Position numbers and translations under genes: made by a program
The notes under the pieces: generated by a model
Database searches by the model: none
Told to the model about the DNA's origin: nothing
The model's input: the letters and a program-made list of their open reading frames with translations, nothing else
Shown here: in pieces, positions 4,334 through 45,972 of the stretch
How the letters are laid out: each line of letters begins with the position of its first letter
How positions within the stretch are numbered: position 1 is the first letter of the stretch
NCBI GenBank assembly: GCA_965644295.1
Contig: CBFFRP010000134.1
Span: 186,001-250,000 of the forward strand
From: Paraphysomonas bandaiensis
Taxonomy: Eukaryota > Protista > Chrysophyceae
DNA: 64,000 nucleotides
Direction: 5' to 3'

Positions 4334-4713
4334 TATGTATGTATGTATGTATGTATGTATGTATGTATGTATGTATGTATGTATGTATGTATGTATGTAT
4401 GTATGTATGTATGTATGTATGTATGTATGTATGTATGTATGTATGTATGTATGTATGTATGTATGTATGTATGTATGTATGTATGTATGTATGTATGTAT
4501 GTATGTATGTATGTATGTATGTATGTATGTATGTATGTATGTATGTATGTATGTATGTATGTATGTATGTATCTATGTATGAATCTATCTATGTATGTAT
4601 GTATGTATGTATGTATGTATGTATGTATGTATGTATGTATGTATGTATGTATGTATGTATGTATGTATGTATGTATGTATGTATGTATGTATGTATGTAT
4701 GTATGTATGTATG
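4334..4713. repeat. (TATG)n microsatellite between divergent VPS16 and WASHC4
   Basis: Nearly pure TATG array of about 380 bp with a short interruption near 4572-4590. Confidence 0.99.
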
Positions 4714-4902: not shown

Positions 4903-7900
4903 ATGGACCAGTGGGACAGCACGTTTGAGGACGATCTCTCATTTAAGAAGCCAATCAACGATCAAATCCAAAAATCTCTTAATTTCGCACAAGAACATGA
5001 AACATTATTAAGAGAAATTGAAAATGCAACAAGAATGACGATTGTTGATACTCCAGTTGGTCATTTTAAGCCTATTCATATAGCGGCTGAGCCACTGGAA
5101 AGAGTATACGCGCAAGATTTAATTACGACAGATAATCCACTACTAAATAAAGTATTAACAGTAATTGTTTTTCTCTGTGATGAGATTAATGAATTACAAG
5201 ATATTGCATCAATTGAACTTTTTCGTCCGTTAATTATGTTTGGCCAACAACCCCCCGGTGTTGAAGTAGACGACGAAGAAGAATATAAAAACGACGGCAC
5301 TGTTGAAAAGTCAATGGGTGCAATTTTACCACACCTTCAAAAAGTTTCCAACTTTGTAGATAGAGCTTACTCTGTCAGTATTAATTTGGTTCAGCAGCTG
5401 TCATCTCTTATTCGGGACAATGAACAACTGTACAGGGCGAGCTTTCAGAAGGTCCACTTGGAAAAGGTTACACGTGCATGTACATTCACATAGTAACACT
5501 CAAATGTTAAATGCAGGTATTTCTCTCTCTTGGACAACTCTTGACCATTCTTATCACATTGGACAATATTATCGACCAGAATGATGCACTAAAGCATGCG
5601 TGGGTCTCATACAAACATATGATTTCATTTGCCCGCTCTGACCCAAGCTCTTTCAACACGACAGAGAGTAAATTGAGTTCATATGAGAAGCTTTTAGTAG
5701 CCCTTGATGTAAATATTATGTCGCGGGAGATATTTAAAGGGTGTATTGATCAAAATTACGAGATTAACGTGAATGAGAACGATGAAGAGACAAAAATCAG
5801 TGTCCGAAGTAATGCCACTTTTTTAGCAGAGATGCTGCACTGTACGAAGTCTATATTAGAGAATGCTCTCGCTGTTATTGGCAAGAGCACGGAGCTGAAT
5901 GAGCGTGAGCATTTAGTTGGCTGTTTTGGACTTTATGTCCTCTATCGACAGTTGGTGCCTCCTACAGTGGCCCCAGATGCGAAATTTCAAAAGCATTTGT
6001 GGGGCATTCAGAAAACCATTCCTATAGTCGTTTTGAGTGATAAGGTAGTGTGGTACCCAGCGGAATTCCTCATGTCATATGCCCCTTATGAGCTCAAGAA
6101 ACCAGACCCGCCAAATCCAGCGGTGTATCGCAAAACTTTTTTGGTTCAATTTGATTCAACATTCAGTGCTAAAGTGCAGAGCCTCATAGCACAATGTAAG
6201 AACTGGTTTATTTTGGCTGAAACGCGCCTGCAGGCGAGCTTGCGACACGAGGATAATATTCGCAAGGTGATGGACTTAAGGGGTAGCATTGTGCTCAAGG
6301 GGTTGAGTTTGGCCAACAGAGCTGCCTATCTTGCAAAGTATTCTTTGGTTACTCATGGTGTGCTACAGGTACTGTAAAATAATACGTAGTGTGTGGCAAA
6401 TAGCGATCATGTATCATATATAGTCCATATATTAGTATGTTCGAAGTATATAACGATCTGAACTGTTGTAGTATTGCATATAGTTATCCGTACTTAATGG
6501 TGTTCCTATTCCAACGTTGCTCGTATTAGGTTCCAATGACGAAAAGTACTCTACTTGATATCTCGTCTCTAGTTGAAGTTCTCAAAGGAATAGAGTTCAC
6601 ATTCATTAGAAAAGACACTGAAATTAATGAAGCCCGTGTGCATATGTTATCTCTGTTAGCATCAGCTTGTTTGGACATAATTAAGCCTCTGAAGAGTAAA
6701 CTGGAGAGCTCCAGAAGGTTAGATGCGGCCAGACTGGACATGCTGACAGCACTGTCTGTTCTACAAACATCGTTGACCACTTCCGAGAGTCTGTCATACA
6801 CAAGGCAGGTGTTGCTGTACTTGTCATCCAGTATGGTTCTCGGAGCGGGACAATTAGGGGAAGCAGATGCGAATAAGCTGAGAGCATATGTGAAGCGAAT
6901 GAGCTATATTGGAAATATTACGAGAACAGTTAGAGAGTATTGTGATACCCAATACCTCTACCACCACAAGTAAGCTGATTTTTACCACCTTGTGCAATAA
7001 ATAACTTACATATGCAGAGATACTTTGTTTCCTATTGCAGTTGCCAATATATTCTCTACTCCGACATCAATGGGGTCACACAAGTTGCAGTATTTAGTTG
7101 CGGCATTTTGCTATGGAGCTAGATCTTGTGGAAGTGTGATACACATTGAAAGTGAACCGTTTGTGACTGCCTACAGGGAGTTTCTTTTATCTGTGCTGCG
7201 CCGAGAGATCGTTGAGCCGTTGTGTCGCAGCATCGAGACTGATCTTAGATTACACATTCACACAAAACACTTGACGCATATGCAGGCCAGTAATCCTAAA
7301 ACAGAGGATCAGAGACCTCTCAAACCGTACTTGGACATAGCTCCTGTTCACGTTCTTGGTGAAGTTCTTACAATTAAGAATGAAGTTAGTCACTATCTTG
7401 ATAGAACGTTCTACAATCTCACTACAGTGGCCCTGCATGACTGGAGAACTTATAGCGACATGCGATCGCTGGCAAATGAGAAGTACGGCATCGTTCTATT
7501 AGACAATTATTTGCCAATGGGTAGCCTGGATCAGGGGCTAGATGTTTTGCAGATTATGAGGAACATACATGTATTTGTGGGGAGGTAAAATCAACACCGT
7601 TGTCGGATTGTATTGACCTGGGATGCGCAATTATTTAATGTATTACGGGGCATATTGCCATATCACTCCTGTGTTTGTTGTATTTATTATTGCATGTACT
7701 CAAGTGACCTAATGAATAAATATGGAAGTCATCCGTATCTTGGCGTCGTGTCTAAATTACTTGCGTGTACCTCAGGTTTACGTACAATATGAATACTCAA
7801 CAGTTTGTGGAGTTCCGCCCAGATAAAGCTTCGAAGCATATCAACACTATCAAGATACAGAGTATTGCAGGTCCATCTTATATGTAGTTCTGCTCTGTAT

Positions 7901-27273: not shown

Positions 27274-27518
27274 ATGTATGTATGTATGTATGTATGTATG
27301 TATGTATGTATGTATGTATGTATGTATGTATGTATGTATGTATGTATGTATGTATGTATGTATGTATGTATGTATGTATGTATGTATGTATGTATGTATG
27401 TATGTATGTATGTATGTATGTATGTATGTATGTATGTATGTATGTATGTATGTATGTATGTATGTATGTATGTATGTATGTATGTATGTATGTATGTATG
27501 TATGTATGTATGTATGTA
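27274..27518. repeat. (TATG)n microsatellite
   Basis: Pure TATG array of about 245 bp. Confidence 0.99.
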
Positions 27519-33433: not shown

Positions 33434-33656
33434 AGTTGATATGAGACTAATAGAGTGGCAATACACTGCAAACTAATGCATGAGATGAGTTCATATCTAT
33501 ACAGCAGACATGCATGTACCAGTGCTGCATGTGGTATCTATACACTGACTACATACGGTATACTAAGTATAGGAACACATAGACACACAGGAGGACTTCC
33601 TGGTTCACAGAATACTCTGTATACAGTGCTGTGTACCAGTATATGATGGTATATGC

Positions 33657-33781
33657 ATGTATGTATGTATGTATGTATGTATGTATGTATGTATGTATGT
33701 ATGTATGTATGTATGTATGTATGTATGTATGTATGTATGTATGTATGTATGTATGTATGTATGTATGTATGTATGTATGTA
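33657..33781. repeat. (TATG)n microsatellite, left part of an array split by the Tc1 element
   Basis: The array resumes in phase at 37258. Confidence 0.98.
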
Positions 33782-33989
33782 TTGTGAGGGAGAGCGGGTG
33801 TGAAAAAAACTTTTTTTTCTCTCTTCTTCAATCTTCTTTGATCGCGATTACAAAACTTGCTCACCTACATTAAACAGTACCATAAACCCACAATTACCAT
33901 GATAAGCACTGCAAATCAAGGTGATTTCTTCTACAATGTGTTGAAGCAACCTTCTCTCACATGTTTGTCATTCGCAGCACCATATTTAC

Positions 33990-35021
33990 ATGTATTCCGA
34001 GGCTTTCCGTCTTTTAATTTTGGATGTGTTTGATCACTCTCTGGAAATCACAAATTCTGTGGCCGCATCACTAGATCATATATACGAGAAATACGATGTG
34101 TCCCAAAGCACAGTTAGAAGGTGGTTGGACAAATATCTGGACACTGGATCAGTTAAACCAGAGTCTTCACACCATTCGCACCACACTGTCATTTCACTCG
34201 AGCATATCAATTTTGTTAAAGAGTTGCTGGCAGAAAATTCAACTTATTCCAACGAAGAATTATGCGAAAAGGTTTTTAATGTGTACGGCGTGGCGTACTT
34301 GGAGCACCAAATGAAGCATGCCATGAACACTGAGGGCTATACCGTAAAAGTTTGTCAAAGAATTTCCCACAACAGAAATGAGGGCTTGAGGCGTTACTAT
34401 AAGAATAATTTGGCCCGATCATTGGATGAAATTCCAGCTCGCTGCTATGCTGTTGTGGACGAATCACATCTCCAGCCGGCAGAAGTTCTACGCCGATATG
34501 GGCGTTCACCACATGGCTACCCTGCCTTCGTGAGTGGTGATGTTATAGGCCACTTCAATCCCCAAGTTAGTTGTTGTGCCATTGCTGCAATGTCTATCGA
34601 AGGAGTTTTTGCTGTTACTGTACACGAAGAAAATGTTGATCATAATACATTTCTAGATGCCCTAGAACATGACATCTTTCCCCACATGAACCCTTTTCCT
34701 GGGGATCGCAGTGTGCTGCTCATGGATAATGCTTCGACGCACGTGAAGATAGATATTTATAATATGTGTGCAGAATTCGGCGTGATGGTTGTGTTTCTCC
34801 CCCCTTATTCTTATGATTTTTCACCAATTGAACCCGTATTTCATCTTGCCAAAGCGCACATTAGAAAGAAGTGGGGAATTATGTACGCATATAAACCACT
34901 TGCAGCTCAACTACATGAAGCTTTGTGGTCATGCTGTACTGCCGAAACTGCGTGCAATTTATTCAATCGAGTGGATATTACCGTTACTTGGAAAGAACAG
35001 TGCGAAGCCTGTAACTATTGA
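33990..35021 (+). CDS. Tc1/IS630-family DD34E transposase
   Basis: HTH-like VSQSTVRRWL. Catalytic triad VVDESH / LMDNAS / FSPIEPVF with 34 residues between the second D and E, plus the LPPYS motif. Intact 343-aa ORF. Confidence 0.95.
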   Translation: MYSEAFRLLILDVFDHSLEITNSVAASLDHIYEKYDVSQSTVRRWLDKYLDTGSVKPESSHHSHHTVISLEHINFVKELLAENSTYSNEELCEKVFNVYGVAYLEHQMKHAMNTEGYTVKVCQRISHNRNEGLRRYYKNNLARSLDEIPARCYAVVDESHLQPAEVLRRYGRSPHGYPAFVSGDVIGHFNPQVSCCAIAAMSIEGVFAVTVHEENVDHNTFLDALEHDIFPHMNPFPGDRSVLLMDNASTHVKIDIYNMCAEFGVMVVFLPPYSYDFSPIEPVFHLAKAHIRKKWGIMYAYKPLAAQLHEALWSCCTAETACNLFNRVDITVTWKEQCEACNY

Positions 35022-35375
35022 TCATTTGCAGATTATACTCTATACTCTACTCACTAGTTACTAATATAGATGTACTGATGATTGAATGTGATATGCTTGC
35101 TACTACTTCGTGATAGAATATGATTAATTATACGCAATAGATTCAAGTAATATTAATAAATCAAAAAAACAAAATTTTGAAAAGTTTGTGGAGAATTTAA
35201 AATATCAGTTCATACAGTTGCATACTAAGAAGAAAAAAGAAAATCGGTTAGTGAGTCTAAACCTAAATTTCGATGCATCGGAGCGTATGTGTTAAATTCA
35301 TCCAAAAATTACCAAGATTCGAAATAAATAATAAATGAGACCCGGCAGATAACGATTGACTGCAATCTGTTCTAT

Positions 35376-37060
35376 TTAGTAAGGGTCGGCAGGATAAGGA
35401 ATTTCATACTCGGCCTCATATGCTATCCACTCACCCCTCTCATCCTTTCGCATTCCTTCTCCCCAGGCAAATCGCTGTTGGCGATAACGCGATGCATAAT
35501 CAAAATCCCTGTGGCCGTGGTAATATTCTGGCGGGTAGCCATACAGCATGTGATGCGGATAATGCCGAGGAGCAGATCCCTGTGGGTAATACGGAGGAAG
35601 CTGCTGCTGAAAAGGAAAACCCCCAGTTGGATAAATAGGAGGGGGTATACCCCGTAGGGCGATGGTCCACAGTCTGGTGGAAGGGGAAAAGGGACACCAA
35701 AAGAAGGGCCACTACTTCCAGCAGGGGGAACACCAATTGGGATAGGCCAACCTTGTGCTGGAACACCTGGAGGAGCTGGTAGAGCAGGGGGCGGTGGTGG
35801 TGGCGGGTGTGGTCCTATTCGAACCGACGAGAATATGATATTTTCACGGGCTGCAGGTATTGGCTTATTACCCCCCTTGAGGTCACTATATTTTGGGAAG
35901 TCTTGACCCATCCAATCCAACTTGAGAACCCATGTATCGAGTGTCGGGTCATACTCCAACGGGTCTTCAGCTGCACGTTCTTCACCTTCTAGGGTACTAA
36001 AGTATTCACATAAGTATGTTCTTAACTGCGAGTAGCTCTTTACTTTCTTGCCCTCGGGAAGCTCGAGTAGATCTTTCAATTTGCTATCAGAAATCAAATC
36101 TTTCTTGCTCCAAGCTTTGGCACGACATCGCTCGATATGCAAGCGATTCCTTTGTGCTTCCAAATGACTCGATGTGTCCGCCGCATCATGTTCACTGGCG
36201 GTTGAAAGCTTAAGACCTGATTGACCACCGTGACCAAATCCTCTCTGCTTGCGGATACCACTTTGCATACTTTTTGGAGGATTAAGCTCGAAGAGTCTTT
36301 GACCCTCTTCACTGCACTCGGTCATGGCTTCTTTCATTGCCGGTGACCAGTACGTGTTCATATCATTTCCTGGACGATGATTCAGGCCAACTTTGAAATA
36401 TTTTGAGTGCATGTATTTACAGAGGGGAAGATCATTCTGTTTATGTTTAACAAGCGCAAGGGAAGAATCAACAAAGCTGAGCTGTCTCTGTAGTATCACA
36501 TCGTCTGGGCAATTTTGGAACGGGACACCAGCAATCACCACATAGTGGGAAGCGTTTTCCCGACAACACTTCCTATCGTGATCTGTCTGGCGTCTAGTGG
36601 GAAGTAACGGTATGTCCAATTCTCCATCGGGAGGGATCATGTGGAAATTACCAATGATACCAGAACTTGTTGCAGTTCGAACAGTAATACCTCTGCTGAA
36701 GTCTATCCTGAGTTGGTCGTTGAAGTCTGATAGTGGTGGCAATAACTTTTGATTATACGCTTGCCTCGCTACGCCCTCAACGAGTGCATGCAAGAATGCA
36801 TGACCTTTGACACGCCAGATATTACTATCGTCTTCAAAAAGATTACCTCCTGGAATCTAAAAAAAATGTTATATTAAAACATCTTTAGCAGTAATTGCAG
36901 TAATTCTCACCCAAATCGTTAATTGGTCTGTCGAAGAAGTTAACTCGGACCGATTTACAGAGAATGCCTGTGCTTCCTCTCGAAATTTAGTCAAAGCGAC
37001 AATTTTTACTCGCACCCACAGACCTTCTTCTATTTCAGAGTTTTGGCTGTCTGATGACAT
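35376..37060 (-). CDS. Transposon-borne ORF B, unknown function (spliced, Pro/Tyr-rich C-terminus)
   Basis: The ATG overlaps the inner edge of the right TIR. Exon 1 is 37060-36911, followed by a 54-bp GT-AG intron (36910-36857) and an in-frame exon 2 from 36856. An apparent 1-bp slip in the G5 run at 35641-35645 hides a YPPPIYPTGGFPFQQQLPPYYPQ...YPADPY* tail ending at 35376. The literal stop is at 35423. Confidence 0.8.
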
Positions 37061-37256
37061 GCTGCGAATGACAAACATGTGAGAGAAGGTTGCTTCAACA
37101 CATTGTAGAAGAAATCACCTTGATTTGCAGTGCTTATCATGGTAATTGTGGGTTTATGGTACTGTTTAATGTAGGTGAGCAAGTTTTGTAATCGCGATCA
37201 AAGAAGATTGAAGAAGAGAGAAAAAAAAGTTTTTTTCACACCCGCTCTCCCTCACA

Positions 37257-37257
<1 letters not shown>

Positions 37258-37287
<30 letters not shown>

Positions 37288-45592: not shown

Positions 45593-45972
45593 ATACATAC
45601 ATACATACATACATACATACATACATACATACATACATACATACATACATACATACATACATACATACATACATACATACATACATACATACATACATAC
45701 ATACATACATACATACATACATACATACATACATACATACATACATACATACATACATACATACATACATACATACATACATACATACATACATACATAC
45801 ATACATACATACATACATACATACATACATACATACATACATACATACATACATACATACATACATACATACATGCATACATACATACATACATACATAC
45901 ATACATACATACATACATACATACATACATACATACATACATACATACATACATACATACATACATACATAC
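45593..45972. repeat. (CATA)n microsatellite between the divergent reductase and WD40 genes
   Basis: About 380 bp of CATA with one substitution. Confidence 0.99.

Follow-up and report, generated by a model that had tools for sequence, protein, structure and literature searches.

The stretch analysed here, a window of 64,000 nucleotides (nt) from contig CBFFRP010000134.1 of Paraphysomonas bandaiensis (positions 186,001 to 250,000 of the forward strand), carries a transposable element of exactly 3476 bp at positions 33782-37257, with a G+C content of 43%. Positions without a contig name are window coordinates throughout. The element contains two genes that face each other between long terminal inverted repeats (TIRs), one coding for a transposase and the other, open reading frame (ORF) B, for a protein whose homologues were seen only within related elements. 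This autonomous DNA transposon belongs to the IS630/Tc1/mariner group, moves by cut-and-paste, was recently mobile and is inserted at a TA dinucleotide in a (TATG)n microsatellite array. Its features and those of the adjoining array, where TSD stands for target-site duplication and aa for amino acids, are as follows.

33651-33781, no strand: left flanking (TATG)n array, ending in the TA (33780-33781) that forms the left TSD copy
33782-33979, plus strand: left TIR (198 bp), a perfect match to the right TIR
33782-33920, plus strand: leader exon on the transposase side, non-coding; 33893-33920 seen in RNA contigs
33921-33977, plus strand: leader intron of the left TIR, 57 nt, GT..AG, wholly within the TIR (joint 33918/33976, cut +2)
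33990-35021, plus strand: transposase gene, 343 aa, IS630-type, DD34E, open in the window copy
35022-35375, no strand: spacer, 354 bp, 29% G+C, on which both transcripts converge
35376-36856, minus strand: ORF B exon 2 with stop codon, 493 codons when intact (coding 36856-35379, stop 35378-35376)
36857-36910, minus strand: ORF B intron, 54 nt, phase 0; joint 36856/36911 found in two RNA runs and in the stored proteins P0017 and P0023
36911-37060, minus strand: first coding exon of ORF B (50 aa); its start codon begins at 37060, the innermost base of the TIR
37060-37257, minus strand: right TIR, 198 bp
37062-37118, minus strand: leader intron of the right TIR, 57 nt, same as on the left
37119-37257, minus strand: leader exon on the ORF B side, covered over 139/139 nt at 100% identity by contig L133
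37258-37366, no strand: right flanking (TATG)n array with the array phase kept; 37258-37259 is the TA of the right TSD

The two ends (33782-33979 and 37060-37257) were 100% complementary over 198 nt, and the match broke off abruptly on the inner side at 33979 and 37060, respectively. The window copy is flanked by TA at 33780-33781 and 37258-37259 and sits in phase within one (TATG)n array, which resumes on each side. The duplicated TA, a feature of IS630/Tc1/mariner elements, was present in all 12 full copies of the element in the genome, which have the junction TA/TTGTGAG...CTCACAA/TA in common, and also in the related element L131. An initial annotation made from the letters of this DNA had described apparently identical TIRs of 198 bp, a TA duplication, an intact DD34E transposase gene starting 10 bp past the left TIR, a second, spliced gene of about 540 aa with its ATG overlapping the inner edge of the right TIR, and convergence of both genes on an AT-rich spacer of about 350 bp; each of these features was confirmed.

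The transposase gene starts with an ATG 10 nt inward of the inner edge of the left TIR. Its product matched the Pfam family DDE_3 (E = 9.5e-19) and, weakly, DDE_1, and it passed the NCBIfam IS630 equivalog model NF033545 with 104.6 bits at a cut-off of 100. The N-terminal region gave matches to helix-turn-helix (HTH)-type Pfam families, every one of them under the Pfam cut-offs. In an alignment of ten sequences (the window copy and nine relatives), the catalytic triad D157, D246 and E281 was invariant, with the spacing of 34 residues from the second aspartate to the glutamate that defines a DD34E enzyme. Similarity to solved Tc1/mariner structures was marginal (SETMAR, E = 0.03; Sleeping Beauty, E = 0.8), and no family of the Mutator-like element (MULE) or MuDR type was matched in Pfam at E ≤ 1.

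The natural full-length product of ORF B comprises 50 + 493 = 543 aa and is represented by the stored protein P0023, encoded on two cDNA-like contigs of the Joint Genome Institute (JGI). The window copy is one base short in a run of five G at 35641-35645, which breaks the ORF B frame. RNA contigs from three runs and proteins of independent assemblies contain one extra base at this site and read straight through it. A second intron of 44 nt at 35607-35650 was considered as an explanation of the interrupted frame and dropped in favour of the one-base homopolymer deficit, as RNA and other assemblies are uninterrupted there. Both genes are open on a Tara Oceans metagenome contig (L135, PRJEB4352), which differs from the window copy by the extra G and a single-nucleotide polymorphism (SNP) only. 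The length differences among the genomic copies all fall into homopolymer runs, one of them in the transposase gene at 34799. The C or G runs at 34799-34804 and 35641-35645 vary by one base, also among L002-L012, and thereby break either gene, whereas both frames are open at these sites in Illumina-based assemblies. There are hints that homopolymer errors in the assembly could break genes elsewhere as well.

Sequencing runs from 14 studies contain the element; most are marine metagenomes, and poly(A) metatranscriptomes are among them. Contigs from two poly(A) runs gave the structures of both mRNAs: on the transposase side, 33893-33920 is joined to 33978-35112, and on the ORF B side, 37146-37119 is joined to 37061-36911, which is joined to 36856-35121. 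The splice joints in these metatranscriptome contigs are thus 33920^33978, 37119^37061 and 36911^36856. The two mRNAs share their leader exon and lose the same 57-nt intron, both encoded in the TIR, so the TIR is a leader-plus-intron (5' untranslated region) cassette for both genes. The full 139-nt leader exon was seen in cDNA on the ORF B side alone. In the poly(A) runs the RNA contigs break at about 35112 and 35121, and other contigs read through the spacer. The shared leader also contains an upstream ATG (33899-33901, mirrored at 37138-37140). The resulting short upstream ORF, as read from the ORF list, has 25 and 17 codons after splicing; with an intron of 57 nt, it runs across the start codons of both genes in another frame.

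The outer contig ends at 33893 and 37146 were rejected as transcription start sites. They are mirror images about 28 nt into the shared exon, which points to the limit of a k-mer assembler at a repeat. The 5' side was reached only by the cDNA contigs L133 and L134, which cross the whole TIR into the flanking microsatellite: they open with 146 nt of imperfect (CATA)n array, match the outer TIR over all its 139 nt with 100% identity, continue through the leader splice and the intron-free ORF B encoding P0023, and run 760 nt past its stop codon into the antisense strand of the transposase gene. A further transcript is represented by P0017, a product from a culture of the Marine Microbial Eukaryote Transcriptome Sequencing Project (MMETSP), in which exon 1 is joined to exon 2 and the frame is changed by a 13-nt deletion unique to copy L012. 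At least one copy outside the arrays is therefore transcribed and spliced. Each TIR had been proposed to serve as a promoter, which these contigs do not show: the TIR holds the leader exon and intron shared by both genes, but no start site within a TIR was seen in the RNA or cDNA contigs.

A search of the genome (62.6 Mb, 669 contigs) yielded 12 full copies of the element and one interrupted by an insertion of about 1 kb, all with identities of at least 99.9%. The flanks of all 13 copies differ, so these represent 13 distinct loci rather than alleles. Apart from L012, which has its own 13-nt deletion and lies in ordinary flanks outside any array, the copies differ over the 3476 bp at three SNP sites shared between copies, at three SNPs seen in one copy each and by a few indels in homopolymers. 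Searching with the TIR alone gave 26 matches, two per element, and revealed neither a solo TIR nor a miniature inverted-repeat transposable element (MITE) in the genome; a derivative lacking ORF B was not seen among the 13 copies either. The family is very young. It is probably also active, as judged from the 13 near-identical copies at 13 loci, the identical TIRs, the transcripts and the intact metagenome copy L135, and the initial suggestion of a young, possibly active family is upheld by the same evidence.

One old copy (L015-L017, G000 C375:41222-44505) is 76-91% identical, rearranged and full of stop codons, and contains an inverted duplication of the 3' half of ORF B. The interrupted copy carries its non-coding insertion of about 1 kb in the spacer (L014:2949-3985, G000 C217:218233-219265). 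With an 8-bp duplication, CAGGGATAGGG-type TIRs of 34 nt and CAATATATTG subterminal repeats, this insertion looks like a non-autonomous element of the hAT type. The right flank of L003 and the left flank of L007 have a 484-bp stretch in common (83% identity), which probably belongs to another repeat family.

We fetched the contigs of the nearest transposases and examined them for a downstream gene. Every contig that was long enough carried a convergent downstream gene homologous to ORF B. Including the window element, ORF B is carried by six transposase lineages, down to a transposase identity of 34%. The related lineages, with identities relative to the window element, are the following.

L031: transposase 63%; ORF B 41% over 355 aa
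L033-35: transposase 53%; ORF B 30%; in L033/L034, TIR of 152 bp with start codons 71 and 48 nt inside the TIR edges
L038: transposase 45%; ORF B match weak; TIR of at least 127 bp, both start codons within the TIRs at mirror positions
L039: transposase 50%; ORF B with E values down to 6e-18 against the ORF B of L038
L131 (contig C249 of the same genome, 3682-bp element): transposase 34%; ORF B with E = 9e-8 and the DFSRGI motif; TIR of 187 bp, TA-flanked, start codons 27 and 4 nt inside the TIR edges

These related elements follow one rule, namely two inward genes that are each launched at one end. In a transposase tree, the lineages with ORF B formed one group, supported at 94/93 for the core and 80/84 with L131 (ultrafast bootstrap / Shimodaira-Hasegawa-like approximate likelihood ratio test), and L038 and L039 were sisters, matching their ORF B sequences. 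The L131 element (L131:2032-5713) lies between inverted repeats of 932 nt that are 99% alike (L131:1070-2001 and 5998-6929, G000 C249) which places it inside a larger palindromic structure or another element. More distant transposases of about 30% identity (L044, L136 and L139) also have a convergent downstream gene. For L044 (L044:1492-3489, minus strand, on the metagenome contig Ga0114968), whose transposase is 32% identical, the convergent partner is a protein of 665 aa with an acidic stretch and a C-terminal CxxC...CxxC pattern, and hhalign found no homology between it and the ORF B profile.

An ORF B profile gave no match in its own genome outside the element copies. A HMMER scan of 1.84 billion representative proteins returned six ORF B matches, and all those with placeable contigs are borne by elements; searches of 5.8 billion proteins added nothing to this set, one of them matching the element's own ORF B alone, and an alignment search of metagenome contigs for related loci turned up no relative. 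The question raised in the initial annotation, whether ORF B always travels with this transposase, is thus answered positively for 13 of 13 copies and for all sufficiently long relatives. The captured host gene that it names as the alternative is largely refuted by homologues that occur only within related elements. Judged from this distribution, ORF B is a dedicated, co-inherited gene of the element and not a one-off capture. The ratio of non-synonymous to synonymous substitution rates (dN/dS), which had been proposed as a test across copies, was not computable within the family, where the differences are too few, and between lineages dS is saturated. In a comparison of the window element with L031, the proportion of synonymous differences (pS) was saturated at 0.82, and the proportion of non-synonymous differences (pN) was 0.41 in ORF B against 0.245 in the transposase. 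By this measure ORF B is constrained and under purifying selection, and its non-synonymous sites change roughly twice as quickly as those of the transposase.

The ORF B protein has two parts, a stretch of about 345 conserved aa and, after it, a low-complexity tail. The conserved region contains the motifs DFSRGI.VRTA, TG.F, TYW.PAM, EHDAA and LP.DKK.K..QLR, then DPLE.D...W..FPKY, and the tail is Pro/Tyr-rich in the window element, Arg/Ser-rich in L031, L033 and L131 and Gln-rich in L038 and L039. Searches with the spliced product were run via the stored natural proteins P0017 and P0023 or exon by exon. Neither the ORF B pieces nor P0023 nor five homologues matched any Pfam family at E ≤ 1, NCBIfam gave no match at E ≤ 0.01, and the best hit of a PDB profile search had E = 0.63. 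A feature search of the ESM Atlas yielded no usable match, and the Atlas's own model had a predicted local distance difference test (pLDDT) value of 0.34. The statement that ORF B lacks a RuvC, kinase or recombinase motif agrees with these searches: no tyrosine recombinase, zinc-finger or kinase ORF was detected by Pfam in this element, and a RuvC-like nuclease of the TnpB/Fanzor type was absent from ORF B according to Pfam and NCBIfam, with no PDB sequence match below E = 0.6. Pfam gave no Myb/SANT match for ORF B either.

Structure prediction followed by Foldseek, which had also been suggested initially, matched no known fold. The AlphaFold2 (AF2) model of the 345-aa conserved region was poor (pLDDT 60) and had no significant match in the Foldseek PDB search or the wide VIA search. 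A C-terminal domain of 136 aa was modelled better, with a pLDDT of 76 and a predicted template modelling (pTM) score of 0.67. This best-modelled part consists of a long basic helix followed by helices (H) and strands (E) in the order H-E-H-H-E-E, an order seen in winged helices. Its comparison with known structures stayed at Foldseek E > 0.6, VIA Z ≤ 3.4 and Atlas template modelling (TM) scores ≤ 0.35, and winged-helix proteins were frequent among the non-significant Foldseek and Atlas neighbours. A winged-helix-like nature of this small alpha/beta domain is a lead only.

Regarding the surroundings of the element, the host has genes for Vps16, WASH-4 and MCM5, and in the window long (TATG)n/(CATA)n arrays lie directly beside the upstream ends of ORFs, for example between Vps16 (minus strand) and WASH-4 (plus strand). 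This position suggests that the arrays mark promoter regions. The genome contains at least seven silicon-transporter loci, large ORFs with cadherin repeats and only 3 SH2 matches, and searches of the genome for the respective families gave no light-harvesting complex protein (LHC), PsbO, psbA-type reaction centre or nuclear receptor. These markers fit a silica-using, apparently non-photosynthetic marine protist; a photosynthetic diatom as host is unsupported by them.

What ORF B contributes to the transposon may be read in several ways, and the dedicated helper supposed in the initial annotation (for targeting, anti-silencing or regulation) is a candidate role. On balance we consider it probable that it is an element-specific accessory protein, acting as a non-catalytic nuclear partner of the transposase that binds DNA or chromatin. 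This reading builds on the missing catalytic motif, the basic helix, the winged-helix-like order of secondary structures and the fast-changing, disordered tail. The transposon would then need ORF B for its own propagation, and the protein would work in the recognition of ends or target or in recruitment or import. The shared TIR leader would keep transposase and ORF B co-expressed, and the upstream ORF in the leader would probably keep translation low. Several observations weigh against this picture. The fold of ORF B has no significant match (Foldseek E > 0.3, VIA Z ≤ 3.8, Atlas TM ≤ 0.35), its whole-region model reaches a pLDDT of just 60, and a complex prediction for transposase and ORF B scored 0.00, which is evidence neither way. 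The transposase has an HTH-type region of its own at the N-terminus, albeit below the Pfam cut-off, and so may not need a DNA-binding partner. Among the assembly copies none has both frames open at once; the homopolymer indels behind this are probably assembly errors, though not necessarily in each copy. Transposition itself is deduced from the identity of the copies.

A different view concerns the source of expression. The element could prefer (TATG)n/(CATA)n arrays and be read inward from both halves of the array that it splits, in which case the TIR would be a leader-plus-intron cassette only and no promoter. We regard this as possible, though rather unlikely. The contigs L133/L134 speak for it, as they begin within a (CATA)n array, 146 nt outside the element, and run through the outer TIR with both introns spliced. 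So does the distribution of the insertions: six of the 12 full copies (window, L002, L005, L006, L008 and L010) lie in phase in such arrays, compared with about 4% of TA sites in a small and local sample of 80 kb (P about 3.5e-6). The window has arrays at 4334-4713, 27277-27516 and 45596-45971 that border ORFs on their upstream side, and the insertion itself lies between an ankyrin-repeat ORF (minus strand) and an ORF on the plus strand. However, half of the copies are outside arrays, and the P0017 transcript from L012 with its ordinary flanks is transcribed and spliced all the same. Assembled contigs cannot show a start site, moreover, and may be extended by rare read-through reads. The related lineages place both start codons 0-70 nt from, or inside, long TIRs, which suggests that the ends have expression signals of their own. 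A bolder version, in which the element specialises in promoter-associated (TATG)n arrays, ORF B tethers the transposition complex there, the split array reads in and the TIR leader and intron yield two mRNAs, seems decidedly unlikely to us. If true, a DNA transposon would here be using a dedicated second protein both to target host promoters and to borrow them.

The role of ORF B itself might also be regulatory: it could inhibit transposition in a dose-dependent way or control copy number, or it could suppress host silencing. We judge this unlikely. Co-expression with the transposase from the same leader would suit a regulator, and its faster evolution and the quick turnover of its disordered tail are what a conflict with host factors could produce. 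The convergent transcripts, moreover, can overlap or read through each other (X17 contig, L133) and could feed small-RNA pathways that ORF B might counter. ORF B resembles none of the known silencing suppressors or inhibitors, however, and its retention in 13 of 13 copies without any ORF B-less derivative fits a helper equally; the present data do not separate regulator and helper. A passenger that was captured once from the host and does not serve the element would account for a protein of unassigned function with a low-complexity tail, as is often found in cellular proteins, but this explanation is very improbable and, by the sequence comparisons, largely refuted. Neither the own genome nor the 1.84 billion representative proteins contain a free-standing homologue, the frames are kept open across lineages with saturated synonymous sites, ORF B co-diverges with the transposase, and the start of ORF B stays linked to the edge of the TIR in all lineages.

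Tc1/mariner/IS630 elements are the textbook one-gene transposons, and tools such as Sleeping Beauty are built on them; ordinary members of the group encode the transposase only. The element described here agrees with them in the TA duplication, the TIRs, the DDE_3 domain with DD34E signature, the HTH-type N-terminus (below cut-off) and the score above the NF033545 threshold. It differs in the second convergent gene, always present in the ORF B clade, and in the long TIRs of 198 bp, which carry a leader exon and a spliceosomal intron common to both genes. This is an economical design, because one inverted repeat is transposase substrate, 5' leader and intron for two genes. The clade with a convergent ORF B occurs in marine and other aquatic microbial eukaryotes. 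The presence of a young, transcribed family in a cultured marine protist makes experiments feasible, and a link to promoter-side microsatellites, if real, would bear on how transposons choose safe, expressed landing sites.

Multi-ORF IS630/Tc1 elements are known from ciliates (PMC7325037; PMC3464196), and some of their extra ORFs, such as ORF2 of Anchois and of Sardine and ORF1 of Tennessee, are conserved from one family to another although still hypothetical (PMC3464196; PMC7325037). Our element resembles TBE and Tec of Oxytricha and Euplotes and Sardine, Thon, Anchois and Tennessee of Paramecium in combining an IS630/Tc1-type DD34E/DD35E transposase with additional coding capacity. As far as their descriptions go, it is set apart from them by having two genes only, which are strictly convergent and each start at a TIR edge, and by the lack of a tyrosine recombinase, zinc-finger or kinase ORF in the Pfam searches. 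Unlike in ciliate hosts, these ORFs use the standard code, and the host is without ciliate signs. Tc1/mariner elements carrying Fanzor genes also exist (PMC3627910), and the lack of any RuvC-like nuclease match in ORF B separates our element from such Fanzor/TnpB carriers. The initial annotation had supposed an undescribed family, and we indeed found no description of a two-gene IS630/Tc1 clade in non-ciliate protists in a literature search that did not extend to subscription journals and Repbase.

The layout had been likened at the outset to maize MuDR, in which two convergent genes (mudrA and mudrB) start from long, near-identical TIRs of about 200 bp; its second gene is lineage-restricted and of unclear biochemistry, and a promoter within the TIR is documented. 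Long TIRs with promoters are also described for MULEs in general (PMC3310237). The likeness holds for the two convergent genes that each start at one long TIR, but the transposase is IS630-type (DDE_3) and not MURA-type, and the TSD is TA instead of 9 bp. By this comparison the resemblance to MuDR is one of layout only. PIF/Harbinger transposons encode, besides the transposase, a second non-catalytic Myb-like DNA-binding protein that is needed for end binding and for nuclear localisation of the transposase. They differ from our element by the Myb/SANT domain missing from ORF B, by the absence of any Harbinger-type Pfam match and by a TSD of 3 bp instead of TA. These two-gene transposons are nevertheless the closest mechanistic model for the proposed role of ORF B, a new protein family without known fold whose role in transposition or its control is testable. 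A clade that keeps such a fast-evolving partner gene would show that dependence on an accessory protein is possible in the IS630/Tc1/mariner superfamily beyond the ciliates as well.

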